Shown here in pieces: positions 1 to 33,114 of a stretch of 64,000 bases of DNA. Positions within the stretch are counted from its first letter, which is position 1, and each line of letters starts with the position of its first letter. Made by a program: the position numbers and the translations under genes. Origin of the DNA: Klebsormidium nitens (taxonomy: Eukaryota > Plantae > Klebsormidiophyceae). The stretch lies in the NCBI GenBank assembly GCA_000708835.1, contig DF237440.1, positions 6,595 through 70,594 on the forward strand, written 5' to 3'. The notes beneath the pieces are model-generated. The model saw nothing but the letters and a program-made list of their open reading frames with translations. It had not been told where the DNA came from and ran no database searches.

Positions 1-3000
1 GCGCTCAAGTACGACAAAGTAACTTTCAGCCAGTTTCAGCAGCTGACTTTCCAGGTGAGATTCTAGGTAACGCTACTCAGAGCAACCCGCAGAAGTGGCT
101 TGAAACCCTTGCTCTCTTCATTGAAGGGAGTTGGAGCAACCCTGGAGTCAGAGACAGCATTGCCTTTGATTGCTCTTGAAACTGCTCCAGTAGTACCGCA
201 TTGCTGCCCTCTACTCCTGAATGCACCCCAACCGGAGAGTCAAACCGTCACATGCTGTGACCTACATTATACCACCCCTTTTTGCCTCGCCAGCCCTTCT
301 TGTCATCTGCCCATCTGCCGAACCCTGTCTCCTGTCAGAACATCTTTTACTTCTGTCAGCACGGCACAGCTTAATGAAGAACCTCTGGTCTGATCAATGT
401 GTTAGTAGCCTTTGCTGATACGCTGCCCTCTTCTGCGACAGGCTCGGGCCCAACTTGTTGAAGTGACGACACCTTTGGGCGGCACATGCCGCATCAGGAA
501 GGGCAACCGCACGGCCATCTTGGCGAGCAACTCCCCCGAGTATGTTGTGGCCACGTTTGCGGTGTGGCTGCAGGGGGCGATGGCCGTCAACCTCTCGACG
601 CGCGTCGGAGATGAGGCGCTGCAGGTGCTGCCCCGTCACACATGCGTTTGCATTTACGAGTAGCGGGTGTTTAAATCGATAAGTCAAGTAGGAGTCCAAG
701 GGCTTTGGACCATCTTCGGAAACAAACGATTTCAGCCTGAGGCTTTGAATACGTTGTTGCAGGTCCTAAAATACTGATTCAAAAGTCAGGCCCACTGAGG
801 TTTCAGGTTTTCAAGACTCTTTGGCTGTGGGCTCCAAGGCTTCCATTGTTTCCAATCCCTTCTTCAGATCCTTTGTTGACTTCAGCCATCCCCCTTGCAG
901 CATTTGGTGTCCCAGGCCGCCCCTTCGGTGCTGCTGGTCTCGCAGGAGTGCGAGGCTGCGGCAAAGCGGGTGGTGAAAGTGAGGCCTCAGACCATAGACA
1001 CTGACCGGACACAGTTGTTAAGGCCTAATCTTCTTTGTGAGCTCCGCAAAGCATTTCGGTTCTCATTCGAACGACTATTTATTTGGGAATTTCAAGTTAG
1101 CCATAATCACATCTTTCATTGCAGCTTCCCTGGAAATCCACGCAGTATCATTGGAGTTGCATTGTGTTCGGGTTCAGGAACACAACCTCCAATATCAATC
1201 TTGCATTCCCTTCTTGACGCTCGGGTTAGCGCCTCCTTAGGCAAGCTTTTAAAGGCAAGGGTCCTAACAGTCCTGGCAGCAACTGACGTGCGTTTGCTTG
1301 TGCCCCGACCGCGCGGTGCATGTCAAACCGTCACTTTGTTACTTTACAGACGCTCAATGTCCAAGACCGCCCGTTGCTCCTGCGGCTGAACACGGGGGCG
1401 CTGGCAGGAGCGGTTGCCTCTGGCGCGAACGTCCTGCCTCCGATGTTCAGAACAGTAGTGGATGGCAAGATGAACGGCCACTCAACGCAAAGCAACGGTG
1501 CGAAGGAGGGCCACGTGGCCACCGCAAAAGTGGACGATCGAGACTATTCAGAGGTAAGCAAATGCAGCAGATTGTGTTACACGACATAGTTGGCTAAAAG
1601 CCAGTGGTGGTTGTTTGGGGAAGCAGTGTAAGTGTTGGGGTGGTCTTCAAAGAGAGCCCCTTGCCTCTGGATACCTGTGCATATGAGGCTTCGGATCATT
1701 CGCAGACTTGACTGCTAGCGCCAAATTTCTGGCCCGTTCTGCAACTCAGTGTCACAGGATGTCAGAGGATTATGCCGAGCTTGACATAGGATTATGCCTG
1801 CTGTGGTGTCCAAAGAATGGACGGATCGACTTGCGGTTGTCACGTTCGATCTCTTCTTCGTAGTTCGAACGATCACATTCGATCTTGGGGCATGCATCTT
1901 AGACCCTGTAGCCATATCTGGTGCGATTTGAACAGGGCGCTGGACTGTGACGCACTCTGATGAAGCCCAAACTAGTGACGTCCCAGAAAATTGGATAGGG
2001 GACAAGGGATCGGATGCTCACAGAATGGAAGGAGGAAGAACGTGGACGCTTGATCCAGCTTGAGAGACCCCCTTGCAGCAATAACTCCTTATGATCAACG
2101 GTCTGGATTGACGGATGTACTGATTTTGACTATGGATCCAAGGGGGAATTATGAAAGGGGGTCCCTACAGAGTCCGCCGGGTCGGAGTCCCCTTTCCGTT
2201 CTCACACTTCTTTCTTCCGCGCCTCAGGCCTTTGCTCCGGCGGTCATTCTGCACACAGGAGGCACCACCGGGCTGCCCAAGCAGGTCGTCCATAACCACC
2301 ACAGCCTGGTCGAGGTGATACGCAGGATGCACGTAAGTTACTCCAAACCAGGACCCGGTTTTTCAACCCACCTTCGAGTACAGCTGGCAGGAAGGATGTA
2401 GTCCAGCGCTAATCTGAAGAAGGGTCAGTCGCATCGATTCTCAAAACGGGGTCAACCTTCAGAGCGCATGTGCTTTATCAAGAGGACCTTTCCTGTATAC
2501 GGAACCAGTCTTGAACAGTCATTTATAATTGAATTTATAAGAGGGTCCTGATTATATCGGATGGCAGTACTGGTCCACCTTACGCCTCACAGCAGATCGG
2601 GGTTTCGAGCGACCTTTTTCAGAGCTTGTCACTTAGCAAGGCCTTTCTTAGAAGGAAGCTTTTGGCCTTCGAACGGACCGAATCAGATCCAGCGTCCGTC
2701 TCGGCATCTGTACCCTCTTTGGAAAGTAGGGTTGACTGGCCTGGGACACGTCCTTACATCCGCTCCGCTTCTTCCAACAGCCAACATCGTTGCTTCCGCC
2801 TTGCAAACGCCTCCCGTGCTTCTTTTTTCCTCTTTCTTTCGGCGCCAAGGGACCCTTACTGTGCAATTTCCATACGCTATCCTTCTATAAAGTACCTTTC
2901 TTTCCACGCAGGATCTGGACCCCCCGTACGCTCCCCCGGGCACTTTGCCCATCCAGCTGGGCTGGATGCCCCTCTTCCACGCGCTCGGGTTCATTGCCGA

Positions 3001-6000
3001 AGTCGGCCTGCCCCTCTATTCGGGCTCGCCCTACTACTCGGCCAAAGTGCGTTGAACCGGCTCTTGCTCCACGCTTTCGATTCCTGTCAAGACCTGAGCC
3101 TCCTCTTGGACTGTTCTAGGAGGCTGACACATTTGTTTGCTGACGTCTTACTCGGCCAAAGTGCGTTAATAGCGGCCCTTTCATTGTACGCTTCTGACCT
3201 TTTCCTAAGGCCTTACCTCTTAAGCTGATGGATCCACGTTTTCAGGATCCCGGTGTCCACTGTCTGCTGACGTCACAAAATGTCCAGCCACGGTCGGAAA
3301 TTTAGCTCTCCAGTCGCGGTCTTTCATAGAGTGTGGAGAGGAGCGATTCTTTCAGAAAGGCCAAAAGGTTTGACGCCTTCCGCAAAAGTCACAGCCCTAG
3401 GGACATTGGTAAAAGGTTGCTCGTATTTTCTCGGGTCATTCCCAGACGACATCTGAAAATCTCTCAGGAAGCGATGCCTCGCTCTGATCACAAAGACCCT
3501 GCTTGCTTCACCAGCGGCATATTTGCTCGCACCAAACCTTCGCGCGCTTCTCACCGGCCGTGTCTGCAGAGCAATTGCAGCAGCGTCGAGAGCTTCGTTG
3601 TCCAGATGCGGCCGCTGAGCACGCAAAAAAGTCCTAGTCCCTAACCCGCAAACACTGCCCCTGGTGGGCCCATCGTATTCCTACGTCGTCTCAAACCTCC
3701 ATTTCTCTACTATCCTTAAGTTCCAAAACCATGGGTAACCCAAAACCCTACAAACCTAAACCCATGAAACCCTGGATTGCAGTTCGCGGCCGCGCCTTCC
3801 GCCGAGGGCCTCCTCCAGGCGATCGAGGACAGCGGGTCGCACCTCATGTTCGTGGTTCCAATGATCGCCGAGCAGTGGTGCCACATGATTAGGCGGGAGG
3901 AGGAAGAGCACGGGTAAGCACTTCCACTTTTCTGGATCACCAATGAACAGCAAGCTCAGGAAACCTTAGCCCCGGACGTAACCAGAAAGCCAAACCTAAG
4001 GTCACACGCACTCCACACCCGCACCCCCCCTATCCCCCTAACTACTCACATGGTTTGGCATGAGGAGGAACACCACTGGTCAGGCAATCAAATTTCCAAT
4101 CTCCATTGAACCTTAAGCTCAGAAAACCCTAAGCCCCCGACGTAACCAGAAAGCTAAACCAAAGGTCACACACGCTCCGTACCCGCGCTCCCCCGAACCC
4201 CCTAGATAACCACATGGTCAGGCGGGAGGAGGAACAGCACGGGTCAGGCTAACCCTCCCTGCCAATTGGCCTCATTTCGATCGCTTCGATCCGTTCGTTT
4301 GTTCAATCTGGGCTCTTACTTTCAGTTGGGATACGTAACTAGCGCCAACGCTGCGCTCGTTTGTGATAGTTCTACATCTACATGCCGGGAGCGTTTCTTC
4401 TTTTCTCATCCGTCCAGTGGAGCAAGATCGATGGAGACGTCCCCCTTCTCGCTGATGGCTCTGAAAAAGTCGAAAGCCGTACGTAACAATGGTTAAAGAT
4501 TGGTCAGCCTATCTGTGATGGGTCACAAGGCTCGTACAGTTTCCCCTGTCTTAGGAGTGCAGTCACCTGGATGATCAGTTTCTGGAACCCTGTGCCAAAT
4601 GACGTGCCAGCTCAGGTCGGGCGTTCTTGCCATGCTTGCAGGGAGTCCAAGACGCTGTTAACTCTCTTGACACTGCACGCGCTTATCTACTCGGGGGCCC
4701 CCCTCGCTGAGTGGGCCGGGTCATTCCTGGTGTCAAAGTAAGCGTCCTGTCTATCACGTAAGCCAGCTTTCTTCGAGTGAGCCTGCTTCGTCCGCAGATA
4801 CTGAGCGTCTTCCATGATACGAGGTTTCCCAACCCGTTACAGATTGACGTTGAAAGCAAGCTAGGTCGCATGCCGGCGCGTAGCATGCCCTTGGGAGACC
4901 CGGCTTTGTGTCAGAACCCATGGAAGGAGATCTTGGACTCCAGTTTTCGGTTTCTGACCCCCATACCTTCTGGTATCCCCATGCGCGAGCAGCTGAAGAC
5001 TCCCACTGACCACGTGTAACCTAGAGGTAGCCCCATAGGAACGTAACCTCTTACACTTGCTGTCGGCGGACCCAATAGGTTCTCACCGGGGCTCAAATGG
5101 GTTGCATGTTGAAGTGGTTCCGGTCCCCAGATCCTCAAAATAGTGACCGGGTGATTTGGAACGTAACCAGTCTTCTGAGTCGCGCGCGCACAGCATACCA
5201 CCCATTGTGGGGGTCCAGAATGGACAACTGGAGTCCACGTTCTCCTTCCCCGGGTTCTGTCAGGAAGGGTTATCCTTGTCGTTGCTACTGCCGAATCTGT
5301 GTTGCACGCTCTATTCGGACGTCTGATGCCGCCGCTATCAACGCCGTCATACTTCGACAAGGCCTGTTCACAAGGCACATACTTATCCCGTCTGAAGCGT
5401 CGAAGACCTCACCAGAGCAGGAAGTCTTGAATACTCAGACAAAGTCTTAAAAATGCTTTCGCGAGCAAATCTCCTGGCGTTTGACATGGGCCCCTTCTAG
5501 TTGATACGTAACCGAGCGATCGTGCCAGCACTGCCAGATTGTGGTCTCCCCGAAGTGCCCGGACCTTAGGACCTTTCCACGAACTGTTCATTTTTCGACT
5601 ACTGAACTCTCTTCTTTTCCAGGGGCGTCCGCCTGACCACTGTTTTTGGGAGCACGGAGACTGGCTCTGTGGCGTTTGGCTTCCCCGGGGGGGGCCCTTC
5701 GTGGAGTGCCTTCAGATTGCCGGGACCCCGGTGGGCAGATCACATTCGGTTTGTGGAGAGCCCCGTGCCTGGCCACGTCATCCTCGGCGGGATGGCAACA
5801 CTTCCGGGAATGGCGCAGGGGTACTTACAGTCGGTGGATCGGCAAACCGGGCAGATGACAGTAGGAACGGGGGACAAGACGTCCACTCATGCGCTCAGAA
5901 ACTTGTGCCTTCCTTTGCTCTTGGTGTGGTTCTCCAGTGCACGCCCATAGCAGAGGAAGATTCCACGACGAGAAAGAATGCACAAGAGAATAAAACGTGT

Positions 6001-9000
6001 ATCATCATCACAGGTTTTGGTCACGCACTCTTAGTGATCAGAGCTCGTGAGTAAGGATTACCGACGCGTTGGTTCCGCAACGCCCAGCAGAACTCTGCCG
6101 ACTCCGATGTCTTTCCTAAATTTAAAACCTCTGTTTCCGCAAATCCTGTTACAGATTCGCTCTCTCGTCCCGACCCCCCGACGAGCCCTACCAAACGAGC
6201 GACCTATTTAATGCCTTTGAACGTAAACATACCCTTTAACTCCGGCTTGTCTCATAGTCAACTTCTTCCTTCTCTTTGAGCCAATAACGTTACGGTAAAC
6301 GTACCCGTAACCCTCTGATTACGACTTCAAACCCTGTTACAGATCCGCCCTCTCGCCCCGTCCCCCGACGTGCCCTACCAAACGGGCGACCTCTTCACGG
6401 TCTACCCCCCTTCCTCGGACGGCCGCACTTGGATCAAGTCCGTGATTCGTGCGGACAACTTGCTGGTTCACACGACCGGGGAGAAAACCAACCCGACAGC
6501 CTTCGAGGGGGCCGTGCAGGAGCTGCCGTTCATTAAGGTTAGGCTTTCTAATCCACAGAATTAAGACTGGGTGGTTGGCAATAGCTGTATTTTGCGGGGC
6601 TGATGCGTACCCGCCAGCGTTTGAGAGTCCTTCCAGGCCAAAAGGTTGAAATTGGTTAACCAGTGATCGTTCGGGGTTCGCAGAATGCCTGGAACTTGCC
6701 GCAGTTGCCCCCTGCTCCCAAAACCTGAGCCTTTTATCTGACAATTAGTGACATCAGCATGACCTCTGCGGGCAAAATAAGAGCATTCGAGCGAGCATCC
6801 CTCGCTCCGCTCAAGATATCTGGTTTCAGAGAAGATAGCCCGTGCCTAAGTTACCTTTCCTTCCCGTCGCTTGATTTGTCGAAGTGACGTAAACGACGAC
6901 ACGTGTTGCAGGATGTGATCGCGGTGGGCAGCGGTTACCCGCGGCCGGGGCTGGTGGTCAAACCGTACTGGGCGGCTGTGGAGCAGCTGACGTCAGTGAG
7001 TCAAGAAAAGGAGGTACGTCAGCACCGTCCTATCCTGGCTGATAAGCGCTGCCGTCCCGACTGCTCGATGACGTTTTTGAGGCGTTACAAACCAACACAG
7101 AGACATTTTGGTGCTGAACAGGTTGAGTAACCCGCACTAGGTCTTGTTATCGGATAGACAAGCGGGCTTAACATATGTTACCGGTTTGTTCACATACTGT
7201 CAGCTTCTAACCAGCCCGTTACCCATCAAGGTTAACCACCGAAAACCCTGTGGAAGTAGCACTTCCTCCCGAACCAGTTCCCTTACTGAAGGCTGAGCTT
7301 CTCGACGTCCCGGTTCCGCTCTGTTTGCTCATGCACCAGGCGTCTTTTACAAGCGACTCTTTCCAAAGCGCTCTCGGGAAGTACAGGAAAAGCTTCCGAC
7401 AGAGCTGCATACCGCGGCGAACCCCTGCATCGCCCCGCGACCGAAGTGCTCGCAACATACTTACTTCCCGACCGTCGGATTTTCGGATCCTGGGCCATTC
7501 ATCGTCCATTTAGAGCTCTTTGAGGCTGCTCCTAGTCGAAGCGACGCGCCTTCTTCGAGGTTTTGAACGCAAGCTTATTTCGTTTCCTTGTTTCCAGGAG
7601 TGGGTGCGAGGCCAGGTGTGGGCGTTGGTCCAGGCGATCAACAAGAAGATGCCGTCCAGTTCGTGGGTCGCGCGAGGCGCCATTTGCGTTCTTCCCCCAC
7701 ACGATTCCGAAGAGGTGGGGCGGTTCCCTGATCGAGGTCCTAGGCTCCTGCAACCAAGCTTCTCTGGCGAGATATGCCGTGTGGATCAAGAGGGAGAGAG
7801 AAACTGCCCTGCCATTGGTTTGGGCAATGTGCTAGATTCTTCCAGCCTTTTCTCTGGGCGAGGCGACTCTGTGAAAATCGTTTTTCTTTATCGGCACTTT
7901 TCCCAAAGTAGATCTTTGACGAGATGAAACCTGTGTAGAGGTAAGTTCTACGCTGAGTCATGAAGATGCTCCGCTGAGTTGCCTCCTGTTGCTTGTTTGA
8001 TCAGATCACCATTCCCCGGACGGTCAAGGGCGAGGTAGCACGTGGCCCAGCGAACGAGCTCTTGAAGAGCCACGTGGCCGCTATGTTCGCGGGTCTGGAA
8101 GCGCCGCCACAAAAATCTGTCGCTCCGGTGTCGAACGGTGTACAAACGAAGGTCAGCGCTCCCATCTTCGATGGTTAAGCTTCACTTGAATGCTGCTCAT
8201 GCATTGCCCAGCTGGTGTCTTCTTTTATTGAAACACCTTCTTCCGCTGAGCAATACTAGTCCGTGTTTGAATTGTTGCTCTGTATAACGCTGGGATCCTC
8301 GGGGGGCATGTGTCTACATGTATTGTTTGAAGGACCCCTTTGAGTACAGTCAGCAGAAGCCGGCATGCCCAAGGCACTTCCTAGTCGAAGCAGATCAGCC
8401 TCCATTTGAAAGATCCTGAAAACGACGTTCTCACTGAAAATTCTAAAGCTGCTGAGTTCCTCAAAACACTTTGTGGAGATGCTTGGGACTCAAACGAAGT
8501 CTCGTTCTGATATCTGCAGGAAAAGGTTGTGGATTTTGAAGAAGTTTTGGACACCGTCCGCCGGACAGCCGCCCAGGTCTTGGGGCTAGATGCCCAAGAA
8601 CTGGACGCTCAGCCAGGCGGTGATCCGCCCCGGCTTTTGGATATGGGCCTCAGCAGTTTGACAGCAACCGAGCTGGCCCAGGTAAGTCCTCCCGGGCACT
8701 TTTTGTCGTTGGCACGGAAAGCGCCCAAGATTGCAGAAGAACTTACAAGGCGTTTAAGAACTGTCACTGGGTAGGCTTGTCCGGTCTACTCACGTACAGA
8801 TACTTTCACATTCAGCCAGTGTAGGCTCTTGTTTGATCTGAGATATGGCAGAATCCACCTGTGAGAAGAGTCTCGTGCTTACGGCGCTGAATGGAACGGC
8901 TGCGAAGCTCTCTGTTCGTTGTGCAATCAACTTCCACTTGTTAGCAAAGACTGAATCAAATAAGAACCCCCCACGCTTTGATTTTTGTGTCGCTCTCATT

Positions 9001-12000
9001 CCGGTGCAGGCAATTGCTGAGTACGTGGGCGTCCCTTTTCCGGCGACCATGTTGTACGAGGACGTTCCTGATGTGGTCGCCCTCGCCAAGTGGGCGGCCT
9101 CCGCCTTGCAAACTGAGGCGGAGCATGCGCCACGATCAAACGGGGCGGTGAGAGAAATCACCACAGCCGAGCGAGCTCTCTCCATTCCCGTAGTAGATTT
9201 CCCGCCGTTGATGACTGTTGTTTCTGAACCATTTTGAATTGCAAAGTTGTTTCTATCACTAGAGCATATCGTTTGCATCGCACTTTTTTATTTTTGTACT
9301 CTGTATATCTTTTCACTCTTTCGAACTGATTGTTTTCTGTCTATCTTTTTTTCCAAAAACAGAAACAATTATCAGCTTCTAGCCTCGCTTTTGCAGGTCT
9401 CCGGTACCACTTTGAACCACGGCCCCAACGGTGTTGCGCCGGAGGGCAAGGGAATTGTTCTCCTTCTGACGGGCGCTACTGGATTCATTGGCTCGCACGT
9501 ATTGAAGGTGAGTTTGGCGGGCGACATAAACGCCAGTTACCACGGCAGACGTGTCGCCCACACTTGCAAGAAACGGCGACCGCTGAAGGGAGATTGATCG
9601 TTCCGCCTGATTAAATCACTGTTTTTGCGAGCAAGCGCGCTCAGCGCCTTATCAAGCGTTAGAGCAGAACCATCTAGTCCGTCTGCTTGTCTAGAATACA
9701 GAATATCCCCTGGACATCGTATCTAGACAGTCCTAGGACTATGGCCCTAAAACTTCTTGGCGGACTTACTCTGGTAGTAAGTACTTCTCAACTACTGTAG
9801 ATGAAGTAATTTCCTTCCGATCCTTCAGAAACCTGAACCCCAAACCTGTCCATTTGCAGAATCTCCTGAGCCGCCCCGCCGACGAAGTGGCGACCGTGGT
9901 GTGCCTGGTCCGCGGGCCGTCGGTCGCCGCCTGCCACGCCCGGCTGCAGCAAGCCCTGCTGCGAACGGGCAAGGGGAGTGAGTCTAGAAACGGGTGAGGA
10001 AACGTTCCGTAGAAAGGGCTGGGGTCTCCGGAAGAAGCCAGTGCACGGTCTTTAGAGGCCCTCTCAAACCAGCTTAGAATGTTGACAACAGAGACCAGAA
10101 CAAAGATCAGAGAGCAGGTTTGCCCCCCTTCGTTTCGTCCTCACTTCGTTGGAAAATATGTGTAATAACCGTTCAGCAGATAGGTAATTGAAAGGGATGC
10201 ACTTTAACCGTTTGTGGAGCAACCATGCTGGCTTTACGCCTGGTTCTGCTGCCCGAGTATGTTATTGCGGCCGCCATTTCTCTCAGCTTGGGTTCGCAGT
10301 CCCAAAATCTAGCAAGAATCAAGCGGAGATTCTCTGAGCTTTCAAAGTACATCATTCCGGCAGGTTCTACCGAGATAAGACGGAGAGCCGCCTAGCTTCC
10401 ATTGAGATTCTCTGCTTCCCTCCAGGTTCGACAGCGCCCGGGTGGTCGTTCTGCCCGGCGACCTGCAGAAGCCGCTCCTGGGGATGACTCCCGACCAGTG
10501 GCGCTTCTGGGGCGAGCGCGTTCACACCGTGATCCACTGCGGGGCAGCCGTGCACCTGACCGCCCAGTACGAGAAGCTCGCGGAGGCCAATGTGAAAAGG
10601 TGCGCCGCAAAGCATGCTTTTGAAGGCAGCCCCAGTCTTTTAGCCATAGATGGTTCGAGGAGCTTTCAACAAGGATCGAGCATCTCGCCGATCGCACGGT
10701 CACCAGCGCGACCGTGGGTAACGCCAAAGCCGCCATGACTTGGCTGTTCCAAAATGCACCTAATTTCACTTTTGGGTGATTGGACAGTACTCAGGATTGT
10801 CTTCAGAGAGTGACAGCTGGCCAACGTCTGTTTGCAGCGTGCAAGAGGTCGTCCGCTTCGCCCTTCAAGGATCTGGACCGCCAAAGCCCGTCCACTTCGC
10901 ATCCAGGTGAACAGCTGCTCTTGATCCTTTTGACATTTCCCTCTGCGCGAGGCATCATTGATTCTCCGTTTGCCAAGTTTAGGCTCGTAAGATCTCCTTC
11001 CGGCTCGTGTCGTAATGTTACTCGGGTATATGCTTTCTCTAATCATTGCGGACTTTGCAGCTCTACGAAAGCTGAGAGTCTTGTGTCTCTGTCTTGGCGC
11101 ACCTGACCATGTATTCTCGGTACCCGCCCCTTTTCAAGATTGTGCATCGGTCCTTTAAATTTACAACTGGAAAAATACGCGCTCCAAACCCCAATCCACC
11201 CTAACTACCAAACCAACCCCACCCGTCCCCCGGGCGCCTATCTGAAGGCACACTGCGGTTAGGGCACTCTTGAACTTTCAGAGTTTTAAAAGGCATGCAA
11301 TGCGTACCTAAGTTTCCGCTTTTCGTCCCAGCGTGTCGGTGAGTTTCTTGATGGACCCTGCTCACAAAAACGGTGAAACGGGGGTGATACCGGAGGCAGT
11401 CGACTTTGTTGAGAGGCGCGGAGCTAACCAGATGGGGTACGCGCTAACCAAGGTAAACACGCTCGGGAAGTATGACATCACGTGACTGGTAAAGTTGACG
11501 CCGAGACATTCAAACCCCTCTGCAGCTCGGACTTAGCAGACGTCGCATGATGGGCCGATTCTCACTCAGGTCGTGTTCTTGTTGCGGCTCACGTTTTGTC
11601 GCCTCGCTGATGTCTTGATTTCTAGTGCGGCTTCGATTTGTTCGGGGTTTTAGGTGCCCGCTTGAAGACTTCGAGATTGAGATAGAGGTGGACTAAAGCT
11701 GCAGAAGTGGTGACCGGGAACGATCGCCCGCTGTTACCGCGAATACAAGGTGCAACCGGACGTGATGGAGCTTGACGAATTGTTCGTGCAGCGGAAAGCG
11801 GAGCTGGCTCTTGCGGCCGCGGCGCAGGGCACCAGCGTCCCAGTTTTCATTTACCGGATCGGGTTAGTGGTGGGTTCCACCGAAAACGCCGGGCTGGGCG
11901 CCGCCGATAACATGTTCACGTGGCTGATTCGGGCCGCGAAAACGTTCAAAAAGTTGGGCTGGGTTCGATGGTTGTGACTTATCTGGGTCGTCTTGTGCTG

Positions 12001-14544
12001 ACCGTCAAAATTCATGCCTTTTGTCCTGGGCTAAGTGTGTAGGGCCGAGGAGGAAGTTGATCCGCCGTGGAGCGTTTAGTGAATAAAACATGTGCTCACA
12101 TACTAACCTTCTGTGAGCTCGAGTGTCCCGGCTGCACTTATTCTGCATCCTACCGAGTTTCTCTTCTTCTAGTGAAGGTCAGGGAAAATTCTTTCGATGT
12201 TCGCGCGCTCCGAGTCCAAGATTTGGGGGGGGAACTTTTGCTTCTGTTCCTCTCCTCAGGTGAAGTTTAAGCCAGGAATATTTGACCGAGCAATCGCTTG
12301 AGAAATGATGGTCGAAAAAGCTCATCTCTTGTGCAAACAACTGACGCATCTTCAAAACAAGGCTCAACAAGCGTACGTTTTTTGCAGCTTCCTCGTCTGG
12401 GACCGAATCCATGGATGGGCATCCCCGTTGATTACATTGCAGCGACTTGGGCTACCCTTTGCCTTCGCAACACTCGGTGAGAGCTCCCTGGTAACTCTTA
12501 GTTCAAATAAGAGCAAATTCACTCACGACAAGCATTTGGATGACGGTCGGGTTGTTGGGTGATTAAGGTGAGTTCGCGTGCGGAGTGCGTAGATCTCTGG
12601 ATTAAGATTCGTGGTTTAGTGAGCGGGTAAAAGCTTTGAAGTGGAAGGGGGGTTACCTTGTGGTGAGAGCAATCATTAGCACATCCAAGGCTCTCTTCCT
12701 TGCTGAAGAAGTGACTGGTGCGATCTGTTACAGTGACTTTGGGGGTCCCTATCTGAACCCACTGACAAAAGGAAATGGCACATGACGGCTGCGTCAAGAC
12801 CTCTTGATGAAGGTTCGACTCGTTTCCTCTCAGGGTCGTTCCGGAAGAGCTCCCCGTCTACCACTTGATTCCGTTCACGCCCCAGAGCTGGGACGACATC
12901 TATGAGGTGAGCCCTTTTGCCTAGGGTCTGAGTTCCACAACCCTTGATTCCAATCAAAAAGTCCCTGATTTTATACTGTACCGTCCAGAGGTTTGTTTGA
13001 CTGAATGCAATTCATTAACGTCGTTGACATTCCATCAGAAGTTGGTGCTTATTGCGCTGCTGGATCCTGACACGCATCAGTCGTTCTCTACCCGCTTTGT
13101 GCACGACACCCCGTCCAAGTGGGGCAGCGTTAGATCTGCATTAGTAAGACAGGCCCACTGCTTGCCTTCACAAACCGCGTTTCCTTTGTCCAGCTCATAA
13201 GCGTCGTTTATACCTACAGGCGATGCGCAGCAACGGGCTTCCATTCGAGACCATCCCTTCAGTGGCCGAGTGGGCTGCGGACGTCCGCACGGCATCAAAA
13301 ACGGACCGCAAGATCATCCAGTTCCTGCCGCTCATTCCCCTGCTGGAGGTGGGGCGTAACGCTGGCTCCGCTTCTGGACGAACGTTACCGGCCTTTCTCT
13401 TTGCTGCACGTGAATCCTCTTGTTGGTCGAATCGTCGCTACACTTCCGAAGTTTGCAAGCCAAGATCGTGCGGTAGGATCTACGTTACGAAACTCGAGCA
13501 CGGTCTTTCTCCCATGCAAGAGCATCCTGAGTCCGGCTAGTTTCCGCCACCTTGGGTCCATCTTAAAGACACAGGTAAGCTGCGAGGTCCTGTTTCGTTA
13601 TTAGCCCAACAGTCCCTCTTTGGTCGTTCTCCCAGGCGAAGTGAACCAGATCAAGGCCCCGCATTTTGAAGCCAGAGTTTAGTGCGGGGCTCACTTCCTT
13701 TCGGTACTTTCCTTGCAGGGTCTCGCTGCAAGGCCGGGTCTCAGCTTCGCAACGGAGCGCACGCGCCGCGCACTGAAGGTGGGTCCCCGTTTTCAGGATT
13801 TCCAAACAACTCACAGCTGTAACACTTGAAGGCTCTCCGAACTCATGTCTAAAAATGTCTAATTCGGACCAGAGAATCGGTCCGAAACAAGTCCAAACGG
13901 AGTCCAACTACGATCTGAATAAGGTCCGAAGCAACAGCACCACATGCCTGATTCAGTCCGAAAGAAGTCCGAGTTGGATCCGAACGGAGTCCAAACCGCA
14001 CTTTGATCTGAATCCTCTTTGGACCTGGTTCGGACAAAATTGTTCTCACGTTGCGTGGCTCGTTCACAAACCTTCTGAGCGAAACGTCTCGCCTGCCCCG
14101 CTCCCGACACAAAGCAGCAAACTTTCAAGCGCCGAGCGGATCATGAGATGCCCAGCTTCGCCCTTTTGACGTCCTGAGAAACACCGTACACTAATTATGA
14201 AAAAGCCTTCTCAATTTTAGCCGAGTCGCGTTTCTCAGGTGCCGTGAGACATGCCTAACCATTGAAATGCCGTCTCAGGGTCCAGTTCCGGGGGCATGGT
14301 TAGCCAGGATTTTGATCTGACTTTTCAAAAGAAGATCCAACATGAGTGAACTTCCAAGTAAAGCATTTCGATTTATCACGAAAAGAATCTGATTGTGCGT
14401 CGTGTCCCGGGCTCTGATTAAATGGGTTGGCAAATCGACGTCCAATTCACTAATCTGTCAACTTTCGTGCAGATGGCGGGGGCCAAATTGCCCACGCTTG
14501 TCAGTGCCGAAGATCTGAGGCTACTTTTGCAAGCGGTCGTTTGA
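1..14544 (+). CDS. NRPS-like carboxylic acid reductase-type enzyme (adenylation - thiolation/PCP - thioester reductase), ~26 exons, 5' end outside window
   Basis: Spliced exons give A-domain motifs in order: RTAILASNSPEY (exon 442-624), ILHTGGTTGLPK (2229-2332), LGWMPLFHALG (2912-3046), LIYSGAPL (4642-4737), VFGSTETG (from 5623), QTGDLF...RADNLLVHTTGEKTNP (6351-6538), IPRTVKG (~8004-8151). The carrier domain follows: LLDMGLSSLTATELAQ (~8520-8681). The reductase domain has LLTGATGFIGSHVL (~9398-9507), LPGDLQKPLLG...VIHCGAAV (~10426-10599), GYALTK (~11331-11452), IYRIGLVVG and IPVDYIA. Last exon 14473-14544 ends AEDLRLLLQAVV*. Exon phases checked for 2229-5623 join in frame at GT-AG sites. Confidence 0.92.
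3035..4250 (+). repeat. Intronic degenerate copies of exon 3' ends and donor sites of the CAR-like gene
   Basis: TACTCGGCCAAAGTGCGTT occurs at 3035-3053 (real exon end + donor) and again at 3149-3167. The exon end CACATGATTAGGCGGGAGGAGGAAGAGCACGGGT (~3882-3915) recurs as CACATGGTCAGGCGGGAGGAGGAACAGCACGGGT (~4211-4244), with a more decayed copy at ~4048-4082. Confidence 0.8.
6120..6394 (+). repeat. Intronic degenerate copy of acceptor + exon 5' end
   Basis: CCTGTTACAGATTCGCTCTCTCGTCCCGACCCCCCGACGAGCCCTACCAAACGAGCGACCT (~6145-6205) mirrors the real acceptor/exon CCTGTTACAGATCCGCCCTCTCGCCCCGTCCCCCGACGTGCCCTACCAAACGGGCGACCT (~6332-6392). Confidence 0.85.
11172..11235 (+). repeat. Short interspersed repeat, copy 1
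   Basis: CCAACCCCACCCGTCCCCCGGGC (11213-11235) matches the reverse complement of 37763-37785 with 1 mismatch. Confidence 0.6.
13880..14035. repeat. MITE-like inverted-repeat element in a late intron of the CAR-like gene
   Basis: GTCCGAAACAAGTCCAAA (13880-13897) vs TTTGGACCTGGTTCGGAC (14018-14035) form an 18-bp inverted repeat with 2 mismatches. Internal direct repeats CGGAGTCCAA and GATCTGAAT each occur twice. Confidence 0.5.
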
Positions 14545-20759: not shown

Positions 20760-22032
20760 TCAACAGCCTTCGTCATTGAAGTATCAAAGAAAGATCAGTG
20801 ACGCTTTGGCTTTGGACAAGTCTTCCGTCTGGAGCGGCAGAATACAAGCAGGAGCACTTCTCTAATTAAGCGATCGTCCGTAGGCAAGCGTGTTGCCAGC
20901 AACCAGATTCACATTCTCTTCCAGCAGCAAAGCAGTGCAAGCTTCTGATCCAATTAGATTCTTGCTGACACATGACAATTGCACTCTGTTGGTTGATCAG
21001 CGAACAAAAGTACCCTACTCAATCTTTTGAATACACTGACCAGTCAAAAGTTCTAAACTATGGATAAACTGGAATGTACCGAGTACACTGGATGATCAAG
21101 AGTGAGAGTTTTGCCAATAGAAATCACTCGATCCAAACTTGAAATGCTGGCATGGACTCAGCTTGCCGAGAGCCAGGTTGACAGCCAGGTTGCATGCAGG
21201 CAGTCATGACCATCCTTGGATATCAAGAAGATATGACAGTGCATGGCAATGATGCTAGCATATGTTCACGAACAAAGATTCGAAGTAAGACTTGTACGGA
21301 TCACATGTACTGGTAAGTTAGGACTGAATAATACTCCTGCGGATCACCAGGCAACGTTGATTCAATCATCCGAAATTACGCGTACAGCCATGAAGAGGCT
21401 ACTGCATGATCGATGTTATTCTAGGGCTAACTTCATGCATGAGAACTGAGAAAGGACGCAGATTCAGTAATGCTGATTAGTACCAGTGCCTCTAGATTGA
21501 TCTTTGCCTCTAGCTCAAATGCTACCATGTAATCGTGTCTTGAGCTTAAGTGACCGGCTCGCACCATATGCACTAACTGGTCGTGTGTGTGCATGTCGTT
21601 AAATGACCGCTCGCACACGCCACCTTGGGAAGGCTACCTGGCAATGCGAGGCGCCTAACTGACCGCGGCAGGCGGCTTTGTAGAAGGCGGCTTTTCCCTT
21701 TGCCACAGAAGCGACAGCACGCGTCTAAACTCCACTAAACACTTCCTGCCTGTGCGCATATACCTTATATAATACTACTGGTCCGCACCCTCCAGCTGAC
21801 GAGCGACACATGGAACGCGGGTGACGGTTCTACTAAAAGGTCCTCTGAGAAAGCCTACTTTTGCCCCCAAGAACTAGTCAAGTGCCCTTTGCATTACTGC
21901 TTATCGGGATAATCAATCATTATATACGTACAGTTTTACTTTGGAGTGGGCCTGGCATATCATTACCTGCTGATGCAAGTGACCTTATCTGCGAGGTTGC
22001 TACAGACACAAGCATACTCCTCCTAGACTGAT

Positions 22033-24790
22033 TCAATCGGGCGCACGGTTGAGATCAATCTGGCGGCGCCGTGGGAAAGCCTCGTTTCCCGGAGGACAAG
22101 GGGACGAGGACAAGGAAAGGGAACTCAAGCAGACCGTTCCGGAAGAGCTTTCCGGTGCGCTAGTGTCAAGGCCACCGTCCAGCAACGGCGACGGAGTTCC
22201 GCCGGAAAGGGGTGCGAGGGTCGCCGCTTCCGCCCCGTTTGCTTCTGACACACCGACTGGCGTCTGCGACGGATCGGGTGCTCCCCGCTTCCGAGTCCGA
22301 GCGGAGTCCAGAGACGCTGACGGATTGGCATCCAGGGAGTGGGGCCGTTTCACACCGCTTCCACCATCGCTGGCGAGCGAACTAGGGGCGGGAGAGTTCC
22401 CGGCTCCGGATTGCGCCGCGTTGTGCACGTGCGTGAAGCCAGGGACTCGAGGAACGGAATCCGCCGGAAGTTGCTGCATGACAGGGCTGTTCCGGCGGAA
22501 CAAGTCCATCAGCTCCGGGAAGTCGTCGACCGTCATCTGGTTTACGGGCTTCCGCCGGAGCGACCGCAAGGATGTCGCAAAAGGGCGGTCTTCAGCCTCA
22601 ATCCCCTGCGCTTCTGCTCCCCAGATCTGCTGATCCCGATGCGACCGCAATTGCCCACCCACCATCGAATTTTCTTCACGACGAAAGCCGGCCGTTGGAT
22701 CGAGGCCCTCGAAACCCACTGCTAAATCAGCCAAGGCCCCTTCGCTCAGTGACGGTGCATGAGCTGGCCCAACAGCAACCCGCTCCTTCTCCCCCGGGCA
22801 ACTCTTCGTTTCCCGTTGGCTGTTTACCGCGCCCCCTAGACTGTACCCCGTTTCCCCCAGCCTCCTATCTCGATTCTCCGAGCTCCATCCCCTGTCTCCC
22901 AAACGCCGTCTCGGATCCCCGGGCTCCATCCCATTTCCCGCGAGCTCCATTAGATTTCCCCCACGCCCCATCTCGTTTTCGGCCGGGCTCCATACCCTTT
23001 CTCCGACGCTCCATCTCGGATCCCCGGGCTCCATGCGGTTTCCCCCAGGCTCCCTCTCGGTTCCCCCGGCCTCCATCTCGGCTCCCCCCGGGCTCCATCT
23101 CGGATCCCCAGGCTCCGTGTGGTTTCCCCGGGGCTCCCTCCCGTTTTCCCCGGCCTCCATCTCGTCTCCCCCCGGGCTCCATTGAGGTTCCCCCGGACTC
23201 CGCTCTATTTGCCCGGGGCTCCAACCCGTTTCCCGGCCCCGGCCTCCCCGCCCGAGTTACCCTCTGCAAAACCGCCGCGGCCTCGCGCAGCTTCGCGTGC
23301 TGCTGCCGTAGTCGGAGCACCGTGCGATAGCTTATGTCACCTGAGCCCCCACTCCCACCCTCGATTTCTCTCGCCTGCTCATCTAAGAGCGCATACATGC
23401 GCCCTATCACAAGCGCAACCTCCGCCTGAGTTTCGGCTGCTGGAGTGGGGACCGACTGGGAACCCTGTTTGGGGGATCCCCCCAGAGTCTGGTTGCTTGC
23501 CCCGTCCATATCGTTTTCTCCGCAGTCGGATCGCCACTCAGAACCATCGAAGCTGAGACGCTTCACTGTTGGCGATGCCGGCAAACCGCCCAGAGGTTGC
23601 ATGCAGCACAGAACTTAGTGCTCTTTGCTTGCTACCACTGGCCAGCTGATTAGGAGCTCCTAGTCCCCTGGAGAAGTCTCTTTGGATGTTTTACCAACCC
23701 TTTGGGGGCCCACTTTCAAGCAATCCTTGACTCCACATTTGAAGCCCAGTCAGAAAGGTGCTTCTCAGGGGGGGTAGTTGCCAGTATAGGAAGGAGGCGG
23801 TTCATACTTGCAGCTGAATTTGACAATGCGGCGGCTTGAGGTTCCAGAATCCGGCTTCTCAATTTCTGCGGATCTAGGGCTTCGCTTTCGAGAGTCCCTT
23901 TTGACCAGGTGCAACGTCATCAGCTGACTGGATCAAGTCAAAGTGCGGACGGTCCTCCACTGCGAGTGCTGATGCCCCGTTATACACGTCCGAAAACGTC
24001 AACCCCCAGGCAACCCCCCAGCTAACAATGCGCGGGGCCTTTCCTAACCCATGCAAGGAGAGGGGCCTCCTCCCAGGATTTTAGAGTCCCTAATTCTGCA
24101 AGACAAATAAGGGTACGTCTCAGCGAGTCTTGTTCAAAGTGTGCCCAGTGCACGTCGTTCTCAAGCGCCTCCCATTCTGATCGTGCTCCTGTCTGCAAGA
24201 TGGAGCTAAACGATGTGGCAATGAAATCCAATTGAGCTCCAGGTGAATGGCACTGGTGAGCTTACGATGCCAGGCAAGCTCCAGTCCAGCACTTGGTAAT
24301 GAAAAAAGGCATGAAGACTTGGACCTGGTAGTGACGTCTTCTTTACAAGCTGTGAATAATCCTTTCATGTGACATGTATGGAAGCCAGAAAACTAACATG
24401 CAAGCACAGAGAACGAATGTTGACAGCAACCCCTTACAACACAACAACTTGATCTCTAAATCTCAGAACGAACCAATCTTCAACTGTAGTGGTCATTGCT
24501 TACCTCGGGAAGCTGCCACAGGCCTGCATGCAGATAATCACCCAGCTGACCTCCGTCAACGTGAAGAGAAAGAATGAGCTCCTCCTCTTTGGTAACTTCA
24601 TGACCCAACGCCGCTCAATTGGCGCAGATTTCAAATCCATCTGCTGGCTTCTTGATATTGGAGCACATTTTCTTTAGTTGTCCCACAAGTTGCAGCCCAA
24701 TCAATTCTGAAATTACCTCGCTGTCCCTGGAAGCAGAGCGGATCAGACTTATACGCTCTGGTGCCGCCATTCCATTCTTACATCGACAAC
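22033..24790 (-). pseudogene. Disrupted gene for a disordered protein with C-terminal EAR-like motif (IDLNRAPD*)
   Basis: ORF 22865-23602 (coiled-coil-like part) and ORF 22033-23160 overlap in different frames within a G-rich repeat that has no intron-like pyrimidine tract. Upstream frames (23600-23880, 24500-24800) read coding-like but carry in-frame stops. An exon-like end LWQLPE|GTAAGC lies at ~24503. Confidence 0.5.
22880..23215. repeat. Degenerate ~84-bp tandem repeat
   Basis: CTCCATCTCGGATCCCC(G/A)GGCTCC recurs at ~23009 and ~23093, with related copies at ~22906 and ~23155. It encodes PGDPRWSPGGxEMEAG-type units on the minus strand. Confidence 0.8.
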
Positions 24791-25744: not shown

Positions 25745-27008
25745 CGACGCAGCCCATAGCGAGTTTCTCCAGCTACAAGCAGGCCGCCTCGGGCCCGGAC
25801 CCCGGTCCATCATTTCGCGGGTGGCGGAAGGCGCGTACGGTGGGTTGACACGGTAGTGACTTGTGAGTCGTGACGTTACATCCCCCGGGCCAATCATCAA
25901 TGATTTTAGCCCCAGGCACACCGGGCCGGCCAAGACGAGGGCCGGGGAATTTCCTAGAAAGGAGAGCCGGGCTGCCGGGGCCGCTGCAACCGGGCCAAAG
26001 GTCTCAAGGCTCAACTTCGATCATGCGTTTGGGTACTTCGAACTTGAACGATGTTCTGTTGTTTTATGCGCTATGCACCCGGGTGTGCACGCGTTCAGAC
26101 GCATCTAAAATTAGCGACTGGAAACCCCAGGATACCGCAGTCTCGGTCGCCCCGAAGTTTTATGACGTCATCGCTGCGGCGACGTTGACCGGGACTTTTG
26201 CCGCATTAGGATCGCTGCGATAGCCACGTGGACGCCCTCAACCCCAGCGCCGTCTTTAAAAGTTAATACGAAGTGAACCATCATGCGTTTGATAAACCTT
26301 TCGGTCCGGCACCCCGGCGGGTTGAGCATCTTAAAAGTCCCGGTCGGCCCTGCCCGGCCGGCCCCGTAGTCTCTAATATCTATGCAGAAACACCTACCCG
26401 GCCGCGCTGCGCACGCGCACATTCACTGCTTCACTGCGTCGGGCCCAATTAATGCATCATGCATGTCATGACCAGTGTGGACGAGCTGATTTCATAAGCG
26501 CCCAATAATTCCCTAGGGTTTTGCACCTACCTAGTATCTCCGTTCCTTGTATAATAGGAATTAGCTATGGGTGGCCTTGAAGTCAGAATAGCTACCTACA
26601 CCGCCAAAGAGGCGGACGAGAAGATTGATTCAGGAGGTACTTGAGATGGTGTTGTCAAGCTGTTGATTCACAGTCGTACCTAATCATATCAGTGGAGGAT
26701 CGGGCTAGGTATTACCCAACTTAAGTCACGACTCGACGCGCCGTCCTCCTTTGCGTCCCCGCCAATCTGCCAAACGGTTCAACTTTCTCTCTAAGATCGA
26801 CAAGCGAAAAGCAACGAGAGCCAGCTGTCTTTTCCTGATCAGAGTACGGTAAATATGTGATCAACAGCTGTTTACAATTGATATAATATGCTGGCGACCC
26901 ACACTGCGGATAGCTTAGAGCAACGACAGATACCCAAGCTGCGGCCATGCCACCTATGAGGGCTGCTGCCGTTCAGATTTGTTGGCTCTAACTTGAGCTG
27001 CGAAAGTC

Positions 27009-30000
27009 ATGGAGCCTGCCAGCAGAGCCGCGCGCTTCCGCGTTTTGATCGTGTCACCTCCTACCTCTGGTGAGCAGCATTGTGACGAAGGCTTTGATAC
27101 ACCTTGTTCTAAAGTGCAAAAAGCACTTAAACTCTTTTCGGTAATCTATGTTCAAACAAGTCTTGCAGGCCCAATTTTTGTGGAGAGCTTGACTTTTTTA
27201 TTGGCTGGGCAAACGGGCACTCTCTGTCAGATTATCTGAAGCACTGGAGGGACGTGTGAGGAGTCATGAGCCGCAATATGAGCCTTTGCTATGAGCCCTT
27301 GGGCCAGCTTTCTGCTGTCCGGACCCAGACTCCCGGCCGATGGTTTCTGTGCCTCACAGGTTGCGAGGGCTTTGAGGCAATGAATTCTTCCACGACACTT
27401 TTGAGTGACAGCATTGTTGAGGACCTTGATGTCATCTGCTGGATGTCTGGCCAGAATCTGGCACCCTAATTCTGCAGCTCATTGCCCAGAAAGCTAGTGA
27501 CCTGTCCCATCATCTCCATGATTTGGAAAAGCGAACTCGTATGGCGAAGTCAGACCTCACTCCATTCCTTCCCAGCTCAAAGCTTCGCACGTTCCCAGGG
27601 TATGGGGCTCAACAGAGCAACTTGCCTCCTTTACCAGCTTGCTCATAATTGAAATATAAACAGGTTAACAGAGCAACTTGCCTCATTACTTCGAATAAAT
27701 AAATAACTGAATAAAGAAATAGATAAACAAATAAAAGTTTCTGACAATCTGCATTCTGACCACCTTCCGAGTGAAACTTTTAGCTTTGAGCATTCTCACC
27801 AGCCCAGTCTCAGGACCGATGGGTGGAACTCTCAGCATTCAAAGCTCTTGCCATTAAAGTAGATCAGTTTCTGAAGTGCTCTCCATCTTTTCGTTTGTTT
27901 GGTCGACAGTCGCAGTTTCTTGCTTTCGTTAGCTGGCCTTTTAATATTGAACTTTCCAAAATTTTAGAGATCTGGGTCTGGTAGCACTTGGTGCTCATAT
28001 GCAACTCATCTTCCTATCAAGGATCAGGACGTAATCAAGACCGGTTTCTTGGGGTTCCGACCACAGAGTGCACTACATAATGTCAAAGCTGAACTGGTAT
28101 ATTCGGTTCATTGCTGATCTAGAAAATCTACGAGGTTACTTTGTCGATCTGATTCCAAGATCGCCAACGCAAAAGCTTGCTGAATCAGGGACCTCTCACT
28201 TACTACAGCCGTACTCAATCAAGAGCGAACTTTACTTTCCCCCGGTCTCTGTCCAGGCCACTTCACCCCGCTCGTTGCCATTGCCTCTCCGAGCTCAAGG
28301 GGCGGGGCCATGACGTCACGTTCCTGGGGCTGGTGCACAAGGGCCGGGAAGACTTCTTCCTCAAAGAACTCAATCACGCGGGGATTCCTTTCCACTCGCT
28401 CGGGTACTGGCCTCAGAGCAAGACGGACGACCAAACCTTAGGGGTAAAAGCTGAGTTCAGCGAATGCTCCCGGTTTCTGGCTTACATGGAGGGGGACGTG
28501 GCAACTTGGATCGGGCTCGACAAGTTCTTGGCCAATCAGACGGTGCAGACAGCTGGCACCGGAAGTGGGTCGGGTAAAAATGTCACTGCAAATGATGGTT
28601 CTCGACCATGCGTTCCAAGTAACCGGCAGCTGCGCGGAAAACAAATACGGTATCCTTCCTGTTTACATCCACATGTGGCGCAACTTCGTCATCTCCCCCT
28701 CCTGGCCGTTTCTTGCAATGGGAACCAACGTTTCCATCGGGATGAGCTTTTGGCAGCGGCTATGGAACGAGTACGTCAGGCTGGGGGACGCCCTATACGT
28801 CGAGCCGTTTGTTTTGAGGGGCAAGCTGGAGTCGATCCTCAGAGAGAAACGTGTCAAGCTCCCCGTGATGCCACGTGGCTACATCCAATATGACGGCAGC
28901 GCCGCTATCATAACCGGAGGCCCCGGGTTCGACTTCCCTGTTCCCCTCCCTCCCACGGCGTTTTACACCGGCCCGCTCTTGAGCCGATTCGCACAGGAGA
29001 TGTCTCGCCCGTTGGCGGCGTGGCTAGCGTCCAACGTAAAACGGGTTCGGTTGTCGTAGTTAACCTTGGCACCGATAACCCCCTCACACACGACATGGTC
29101 GTGGTAATCATTGGTGGGCTCCAGGATTTAGCCATGGAGGTTCTGTGGGTAGTTACGGAAACCGCGTACAGTGCGCTCGCGCCCTTCGAGGTCCCCGTCA
29201 ACTTCTGGTTGGAGAAGTCCATTCCGCAGCGGGAGGTTTTACGGCACCCGGCCGTGGCCGCGATGATTACGCACTGCGGGGGAGATGGAGCGCAGGTAAA
29301 CTTTCTCTCACGAAGTGCTGAAAGTGTTAATCAGACCACTGCAATTTAAGCAGCCGATTCCACAGGATGTTGCAGTCGCTTTCTCGCTAGAGTGCTCTTT
29401 CGAGGTTCGACGCGTGGCTTGCGTCACGGTTTGCTTGTAAAGCGTTCAGCCACTTGACAGACTGTTATCTACAAGTTCCCCGCATCCAGACGAATCCAGA
29501 TCAGGGGACCCAAGGAACATCTAAGCACGCAGCGGTAGGCGGAAAATTTGCTCGAAGGTTTTGTGCGGCTTCGAGTTTCTGGTCCCTAAGTGTTGGTGCC
29601 CGTCACAATCATCCGGGGCCGGATCCGCTCTTCTCAAGTTTTGTTGGGCACCTTAGACGTGGAGGACATGTCCCCTCTGCTGTACGTAGATCTTAAAAAC
29701 GCAGAGAGGGCTGACTTTTGAAGACCGGACCTTTAAGAAGCTGACTTGTTTCTTTGAGAAGCGGGCTATCAATCCTTATAGTACGTTAGAATATCTACGG
29801 AGCAGCTTGTGGGAACGAAAGGGAGCTGAAAGTCAGGGATCTAGATCGGCTGTGTTTGACATTTGGAAAGGCTGACCCTCGCCTGTGTTGGATGCAAGAA
29901 GCTTTGGCGTATGGGGTTCCTGTGATTGGTTTACCGATGACGCACGGTGAGGGCGAGCAGAAAAGTCGTTGCTCGGGTGATGCAGCGCTGCGGCAGACGT

Positions 30001-32134: not shown

Positions 32135-33114
32135 NNNNNNNNNNNNNNNNNNNNNNNNNNNNNNNNNNNNNNNNNNNNNNNNNNNNNNNNNNNNNNNNNN
32201 NNNNNNNNNNNNNNNNNNNNNNNNNNNNNNNNNNNNNNNNNNNNNNNNNNNNNNNNNNNNNNNNNNNNNNNNNNNNNNNNNNNNNNNNNNNNNNNNNNNN
32301 NNNNNNNNNNNNNNNNNNNNNNNNNNNNNNNNNNNNNNNNNNNNNNNNNNNNNNNNNNNNNNNNNNNNNNNNNNNNNNNNNNNNNNNNNNNNNNNNNNNN
32401 NNNNNNNNNNNNNNNNNNNNNNNNNNNNNNNNNNNNNNNNNNNNNNNNNNNNNNNNNNNNNNNNNNNNNNNNNNNNNNNNNNNNNNNNNNNNNNNNNNNN
32501 NNNNNNNNNNNNNNNNNNNNNNNNNNNNNNNNNNNNNNNNNNNNNNNNNNNNNNNNNNNNNNNNNNNNNNNNNNNNNNNNNNNNNNNNNNNNNNNNNNNN
32601 NNNNNNNNNNNNNNNNNNNNNNNNNNNNNNNNNNNNNNNNNNNNNNNNNNNNNNNNNNNNNNNNNNNNNNNNNNNNNNNNNNNNNNNNNNNNNNNNNNNN
32701 NNNNNNNNNNNNNNNNNNNNNNNNNNNNNNNNNNNNNNNNNNNNNNNNNNNNNNNNNNNNNNNNNNNNNNNNNNNNNNNNNNNNNNNNNNNNNNNNNNNN
32801 NNNNNNNNNNNNNNNNNNNNNNNNNNNNNNNNNNNNNNNNNNNNNNNNNNNNNNNNNNNNNNNNNNNNNNNNNNNNNNNNNNNNNNNNNNNNNNNNNNNN
32901 NNNNNNNNNNNNNNNNNNNNNNNNNNNNNNNNNNNNNNNNNNNNNNNNNNNNNNNNNNNNNNNNNNNNNNNNNNNNNNNNNNNNNNNNNNNNNNNNNNNN
33001 NNNNNNNNNNNNNNNNNNNNNNNNNNNNNNNNNNNNNNNNNNNNNNNNNNNNNNNNNNNNNNNNNNNNNNNNNNNNNNNNNNNNNNNNNNNNNNNNNNNN
33101 NNNNNNNNNNNNNN
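32135..33114. other. Assembly gap (N run)
   Basis: Continuous N bases. Confidence 1.

Follow-up and report, generated by a model that had tools for sequence, protein, structure and literature searches.

Carboxylate reductases built of an adenylation (A), a carrier (T) and a thioester-reductase (R) domain are known biocatalysts from fungi and actinobacteria, with NcCAR, AtCAR, Fub8 and PnlA being examples of the fungal type, and none from plants was found in the searches reported here. The fungal adenylate-forming reductases fall in seven clades, and the events catalyzed by the carboxylic acid reductases (CARs) follow the order of adenylation, thioesterification and NADPH-dependent release (PMC9605436). 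The present analysis concerns an intron-rich gene of this A-T-R architecture in the alga Klebsormidium nitens, which occupies the first 14,544 positions of a stretch of 64,000 nt (hereafter the window; assembly GCA_000708835.1, contig DF237440.1, positions 6,595-70,594 of the forward strand). The reading favored here, to which a probability of roughly three in four is assigned, is that this is a nuclear Klebsormidium gene predicted to encode a nonribosomal peptide synthetase (NRPS)-like A-T-R enzyme of ~1,140 residues, which forms with two paralogues a small family of three with a predicted role in carboxylic acid reduction. A literature search found no publication on these genes; one “Other(A)” gene cluster is attributed to K. 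nitens in an antiSMASH survey, which says nothing more about it (PMC7073580).

A first-pass annotation, made from the letters of the window, had described a single spliced A-T-R gene with about 25 introns and an end at position 14544, and this observation is confirmed. The gene model, which was obtained by tblastn and a splice-site search with the protein of the paralogue KFL_006760045 as the guide and with the 3′ end read by eye, has 26 exons and 25 introns, all of the latter GT-AG and with a mean length of 450 nt, and its frame runs through 1,095 codons without any stop before the stop codon. The exons have a GC content of 62%, compared with 50% in the introns. The gene is truncated at its 5′ side by the window edge, so that the N-terminal ~46 residues precede the window; in the paralogous locus they lie within ~440 nt before the point matching window base 1. 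Pfam models were run on the stop-free pieces of the + strand (1 to 14.5 kb), with the following exon-sized matches, given below the extent of the gene:

1-14544, + strand: A-T-R gene, 5′-truncated by the window edge; 26 exons, 25 introns, 1,095 codons and stop
409-660 and 2054-2398, + strand: AMP-binding
6319-6561 and 6888-7127, + strand: AMP-binding_C_3 (PF23562)
8511-8771, + strand: PP-binding
9238-9594, 9737-9994, 10406-10735 (E 1.9e-12) and 11714-11974, + strand: NAD_binding_4

The exons, all on the + strand, are placed by the gene model, with any further support in brackets:

1-54, +: exon 1, partial, its start lying before the window (donor GT at 55)
442-624, +: exon 2, AMP-binding with the A2 motif (Pfam)
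901-978, +: exon 3
1350-1553, +: exon 4
2228-2332, +: exon 5, A3 P-loop HTGGTTGLPK at 2252-2281 (Pfam, motif)
2912-3046, +: exon 6, A4 motif WMPLFHALGF at 2963-2992 (motif)
3783-3913, +: exon 7
4642-4737, +: exon 8
5623-5860, +: exon 9, A5 motif FGSTETG at 5645-5665 (motif)
6343-6537, +: exon 10, A7 motif YQTGDLF at 6376-6396, A8 hinge IRADNLLVHTTGEKTNP at 6445-6495, and the start of AMP-binding_C_3 (Pfam)
6912-7013, +: exon 11, AMP-binding_C_3 (Pfam)
7598-7714, +: exon 12, AMP-binding_C_3
8005-8151, +: exon 13, A10 lysine in PRTVKGE at 8014-8034 (motif)
8520-8681, +: exon 14, carrier domain, with the phosphopantetheine serine in MGLSSL at 8643-8672 (Pfam, motif)
9010-9147, +: exon 15, second half of the carrier domain and linker
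9397-9507, +: exon 16, Rossmann motif of the R domain, TGATGFIGSHV at 9469-9501 (Pfam, motif)
9860-9993, +: exon 17, NAD_binding_4 (Pfam)
10426-10599, +: exon 18, core of NAD_binding_4 and query of the exhaustive search (Pfam)
10838-10906, +: exon 19, in which the FASSVSV motif begins, to run on into exon 20 (motif)
11332-11452, +: exon 20, catalytic GYALTK (YxxxK) at 11435-11452 (motif)
11792-11962, +: exon 21, with a shifted donor
12388-12476, +: exon 22
12834-12906, +: exon 23
13220-13348, +: exon 24, C-terminal subdomain of the R domain (matches the KFL_006760020 C-terminus)
13719-13778, +: exon 25 (KFL_006760020 comparison)
14473-14544, +: exon 26, stop codon at 14542-14544 (KFL_006760020 comparison)

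The domain order of the gene is thus AMP-binding, AMP-binding_C_3, PP-binding and NAD_binding_4, and the same order of PF00501, PF23562, PF00550 and PF07993 is found in the proteins of both paralogues, KFL_006760020 and KFL_006760045. PF23562 is weak on exons 10 and 11 of the window (E 0.003 and 0.041) and clear on the two paralogues (E 1e-21 and 2e-23). The motifs A3, A5, A7, A8 and A10 of the AMP-binding core are all intact, the carrier domain with its phosphopantetheine serine sits between the A and R domains in a continuous frame, GLSS is invariant over the algal and fungal rows of the alignment, and the terminal NAD_binding_4 thioester reductase retains both GxxGxxG and SS...YxxxK. The motifs quoted by the first-pass annotation (GLSSL, TGATGFIGS, GYALTK, PRTVKG, and RADNLLVHTTGEKTNP at 6445-6495) are all in place. 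The A4 motif reads MPLFH, with His in place of the Asp typical of amino-acid-activating domains; among the ANL enzymes, MPLFH is the form of the acyl-CoA synthetases, 4CL and luciferase, while the Asp form marks the amino-acid activators. Fatty-acid and acyl-CoA ligase models of NCBIfam score above the amino-acid adenylation model on the A domain of KFL_006760020. The solved structures best matching that protein are the bacterial CARs 5msc and 5msp (E ~1e-22) and 5mso (E 1.6e-25), over ~1,000 residues, although it scores 156 bits on the NCBIfam equivalog for carboxylic acid reductase, NF041592, whose cut-off is 1300. The condensation domain PF00668, expected of a canonical NRPS, is absent from all exon pieces of the window and from both paralogues in the Pfam scans.

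The relatives of the gene were sought with several queries. When 1.84 billion cluster representatives were searched exhaustively with the 57-residue peptide of exon 18 (from piece 10406-10735), one strong match was obtained, KFL_006760045 (1,050 residues), which is 84% identical over the exon; beyond the K. nitens cluster nothing passed E 1e-10 with this query, which covers the R domain only. Word-index searches, which are of limited sensitivity, with KFL_006760045 and with a profile built from four sequences, two of them algal, returned full-length relatives of the same architecture from fungi only, at 22-26% identity, in the following genera:

Benjaminiella, Penicillium, Podospora, Dichomitus, Lentinus, Marasmius, Elasticomyces, Pyrenula, Peniophora and Aspergillus

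The protein-language-model look-alikes of KFL_006760020 were likewise fungal proteins first, with actinobacterial CARs next. No plant or algal relative besides K. nitens was found by word-index searches with KFL_006760045, with the four-sequence profile, or with a 588-residue T-R protein encoded by a contig of run SRR9302961, the last of these queries having full-length kin of >1,029 residues outside its reach. Broadly distributed plant orthologues, which the first interpretation did not expect, thus did not appear in either the exhaustive exon 18 search or the word-index searches. When 185,579 genomes of bacteria and archaea, as well as JGI metagenomes, were searched with one or two peptide patterns, nothing above ~25-36% identity was obtained among the matches listed.

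The nearest sequence outside Klebsormidium is the SRR9302961 contig just mentioned, a eukaryotic 10.9-kb Logan contig with 38.6% GC and an A-T-R gene (7000-10506, + strand), the T-R part of which is 32% identical and is itself a single 588-residue exon preceded by A-domain and PF23562 exons. Apart from this gene, no sequence was found to stand closer to the algal family than the fungal enzymes do, and the unusual motifs GLSSL and LLVH(S/T)TGEKT are common to it and the Klebsormidium family. It adjoins a TPT-type sugar-nucleotide transporter and a chromodomain open reading frame (ORF). The transporter fragment, through its language-model features only, provides a weak lead that the contig may derive from a streptophyte.

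In an A-domain tree, computed with IQ-TREE from 549 columns in 31 rows, the SRR9302961 contig groups with the three Klebsormidium proteins in a clade (100/99) that lies inside an 18-row clade with fungal A-T-R and A-T-TE (thioesterase) enzymes (100/100), outside of which fall bacterial A-T-R proteins, NRPSs and PF23562-type acyl-CoA synthetases. Inside the 18-row clade, a polytomy joins the algal group with four fungal ones. In an R-domain FastTree of 113 domains, the Klebsormidium sequences are joined to the SRR9302961 protein (99) and stand next to a fungal clade (81). A fungal affinity is supported, because the A-domain and the R-domain trees agree on it, while the trees leave the direction and the age of any transfer undecided. 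Judged from these sequence comparisons, the gene is to be grouped by descent with the fungal-type NRPS-like adenylate-forming reductases, and not with the bacterial CARs or Lys2. The suggestion made at first reading, that the gene is closer to the fungal NRPS-like enzymes, is thereby upheld in several ways (PF23562, the full-length relatives, the look-alikes and the A-domain clade), and the first interpretation as a whole is supported in its tested parts, the long domestication that it proposed being conjectural.

The two paralogues form a convergent pair on scaffold DF237625.1 of the same assembly, with an EF-hand gene between them, and carry the deposited names “hypothetical protein” and “Carrier domain-containing protein”. 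The protein of the window copy is 85-87% identical to KFL_006760020 and 77% identical to KFL_006760045. The window DNA is colinear with the KFL_006760020 gene only, at 85-92% identity in the exons and ~70% in the introns, and the two genes share the lengths of all 26 exons and the intron positions, whereas the flanks show no match: the neighbors are an O-methyltransferase and the EF-hand gene at the paralogous locus, and UDPGT genes at the window copy. With the colinearity thus confined to the gene, it follows that the window copy is no allele but a third paralogue at a separate locus. The public models of both paralogues look imperfect. That of KFL_006760045 ends ...DDIY, its last exons being called as a separate 85-residue gene (paralogue locus 26829-28023, - strand), and that of KFL_006760020 is short by ~14 residues where exon 9 meets an assembly gap (paralogue locus ~11900-11960).

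It has to be noted that several points weigh against the assignment of the window copy as a working carboxylic acid reductase. The whole-protein Pfam, NCBIfam, structure and language-model scans used KFL_006760020 as a stand-in; the thioester-reductase match of that protein, at 175.8, is under the curated NCBIfam cut-off of 213.35; the nearest characterized enzymes are only ~25% identical; and the activity of the whole algal clade is a prediction. In the window copy itself, the donor of intron 21 after 11953 has been lost through a change of GT to TT (AAG/GTGAGC in KFL_006760020, AAG TTGGGC here), and the replacement donor of exon 21 at 11962 is weak and predicted only. Moreover, when the contigs of four runs labeled RNA were mapped to window positions 6300-12299, none belonged to the window copy. 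The sole contig on this interval, 421 nt long and from run X5, carries all six listed KFL_006760020 variants, and its overhang corresponds exactly to the exon 9 end of KFL_006760020; therefore, the expression evidence concerns the paralogue and not the window copy. If run X5 is RNA, KFL_006760020 is transcribed and spliced at its exon 9/10 junction (the homologue of the 5860/6343 junction). The splicing that the first-pass annotation had looked to RNA to confirm is, on that condition, seen at one joint of the paralogue and at no joint of the window copy. Word-index searches of a 5.8-billion-cluster collection also met no protein equal to the window product, the gene for which may lack a public model or be divided between several. 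Taken together, the lost donor, the contig of the paralogue and the missing protein would suit a silent or decaying duplicate, i.e. a young pseudogene, with the paralogues on DF237625.1 doing the work. Such a fate is nevertheless unlikely, as the 1,095 codons contain neither a stop nor a frameshift, the exon lengths are conserved in 26 of 26 cases, and the ratio of nonsynonymous to synonymous divergence (Nei-Gojobori dN/dS) against KFL_006760020 is 0.245 at a dS of 0.29 (0.19 in the A domain and 0.32 in the R domain), which indicates long-term purifying selection over at least most of the history of the copy. In addition, 9 nt past the lost donor there is an in-frame GT (TGG/GTTCGA), the use of which would add three residues, Leu-Gly-Trp, and the absence of a window-copy contig is weak evidence, because rare transcripts drop out of contigs. 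The mapping further gave two 32-nt matches in intron 19 (11216-11247), which agree, with one difference, with the interior of contigs of 3.1-3.5 kb with a high word depth (71-86) in runs X6 and X7 and probably reflect a short shared motif.

The reading as a carboxylic acid reductase gene of the alga has also to be set against three accounts of its identity and origin. An amino-acid or aminoadipate reductase, either Lys2-like or of the fungal clade I tyrosine/leucine type, would have the same A-T-R architecture, the Lys2 equivalog TIGR03443 is matched at E 1e-28, and the fungal A-T-R clades I and II use amino acids and aminoadipate (PMC9605436). That match, however, amounts for KFL_006760020 to 99 bits, where the cut-off is 1030, and is confined to the R domain, leaving the A domain unmatched, and the amino-acid adenylation model TIGR01733 reaches 60 (cut-off 317), less than several models of acyl-CoA ligases do. 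With the His of the A4 motif also speaking against it, an enzyme of this kind is very improbable, and the Lys2 identity, which the first interpretation had likewise not favored, was rejected on these grounds. Lysine in the green lineage is made through diaminopimelate, which further counts against Lys2. Even more doubtful is the notion that two genes or transcripts, one for the A part and one for the T-R part, are fused in appearance only. The RNA does span a single junction, which lies within the A domain and in a paralogue, but the frame and the intron phases are continuous from A10 in exon 13 through the carrier in exon 14 to the R domain, and the introns there measure 249-368 nt and have canonical sites; both paralogues are publicly annotated in K. 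nitens as single A-T-R proteins, and the SRR9302961 relative and all fungal relatives are fused in the same order. On the strength of the continuous phases and of the fused paralogues and relatives, the split-gene reading was rejected, and the single spliced gene of the first-pass annotation stands. Contamination of the assembly by fungal or bacterial DNA, against which that annotation had also argued, can be given next to no credence: the nearest named relatives are indeed fungal, but they are only 22-26% identical, and contamination is also opposed by the 25 introns, an exon/intron GC contrast that resembles the surroundings, a scaffold shared with UDPGT and acetyl-CoA synthetase genes, the presence of the family in GCA_000708835.1 in three copies at two loci, and the fact that DNA runs of the organism contain 0.93 of the words of the stretch. 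Contamination was rejected on the introns, the paralogues, the scaffold neighbors and the DNA runs.

In the mechanism proposed for the Klebsormidium reductase, the N-terminal acyl-CoA-synthetase-type A domain, together with PF23562, would use ATP to convert an acid without an alpha-amino group to its acyl-adenylate, following which the acyl group would be transferred to a phosphopantetheine arm on the second serine of the carrier motif GLSSL, this arm having presumably been installed beforehand by a separate phosphopantetheinyl transferase (PPTase). The C-terminal thioester reductase, which is of the short-chain-dehydrogenase type (TGATGFIGS, SS...YxxxK), would then release the aldehyde with NADPH, and the aldehyde may be reduced further to the alcohol. 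What the gene itself displays is a set of domains in a given order with catalytic motifs that are intact, and from these the reductase activity, the need for a PPTase and a two-electron as against a four-electron reduction are predicted.

As to the substrate, aromatic or phenolic acids are slightly favored from the neighboring genes, since an O-methyltransferase stands beside a paralogue and two tandem UDPGT genes are near the window copy; fatty acids are possible, and the ligase-like A domain would suit them equally. The O-methyltransferase, of the COMT type (Dimerisation and Methyltransf_2), lies directly upstream of KFL_006760020 (paralogue locus 784-4303, + strand) and may be a partner in function to the reductases. 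Both UDPGT genes contain introns and are situated 14-25 kb downstream of the reductase; their Pfam E values are 1.7e-09 and 5.4e-11, and a weak N-terminal match to Glyco_transf_28 is seen in one of them:

28100-30900, + strand: UDPGT gene
36600-39500, + strand: UDPGT gene

No GH1 relic was found among the ten window ORFs that were scanned. Elsewhere in the window, which has a GC content of ~52%, the following features were seen; the ORFs of the GC-rich segment had no Pfam match:

22000-23650, both strands: GC-rich segment (61%) with overlapping ORFs of up to 407 residues, with Pro/Gly/Ser/Arg-rich repeats
32135-33114 and 42544-43448: N runs (two assembly gaps)
44000-51600, - strand: multi-exon acetyl-CoA synthetase gene, with ACAS_N at 51148-51594 and AMP-binding at 48537-48974

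A much wider and quite speculative proposal, which is regarded as improbable, is that the genes represent an old lineage-specific CAR-type clade, shared by Klebsormidium with one further streptophyte or more (among them the source of SRR9302961), that would make phenolic aldehydes or alcohols from free acids (e.g. hydroxybenzoic or hydroxycinnamic) as a CoA-independent alternative to 4CL and CCR, together with the neighboring O-methyltransferase and glycosyltransferase genes, and that would have arisen by an ancient fungal exchange near terrestrialization. Irrespective of this proposal, a three-member family that is intact and under purifying selection, in a streptophyte alga near the base of the land-plant lineage, offers a clonable candidate for an unrecognized aldehyde/alcohol route in early terrestrial green algae, and the algal family provides a test case for gene exchange between fungus and alga as against ancient inheritance. 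Should it be only a lineage-specific curiosity, it would be an ordinary addition to a known enzyme class.

Among the known systems, the fungal NRPS-like A-T-R reductases share with the Klebsormidium gene all four of its Pfam domains, PF23562 included, their arrangement along the protein, and the expected chemistry (ATP, phosphopantetheine, NADPH and aldehyde). The algal gene differs from them in its low full-length identity and, among the fungal proteins sampled, its own starred clade, as well as in its introns, which number at least 26 and measure ~450 nt, and its streptophyte host. The bacterial CARs of Nocardia, Mycobacterium and Segniliparus (5msc, 5mso and 5msp) are colinear with it as A-T-R proteins over ~1,000 residues and likely have the same overall mechanism, whereas the sampled bacterial CAR-type A-T-R proteins carry PF13193 and not PF23562 and lie outside the clade of the A-domain tree. 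Lys2, the L-aminoadipate-semialdehyde dehydrogenase, shares the A-T-R architecture and the thioester-reductase domain with the Klebsormidium gene, which in contrast has an A domain like that of acyl-CoA ligases, its A4 motif carrying His.

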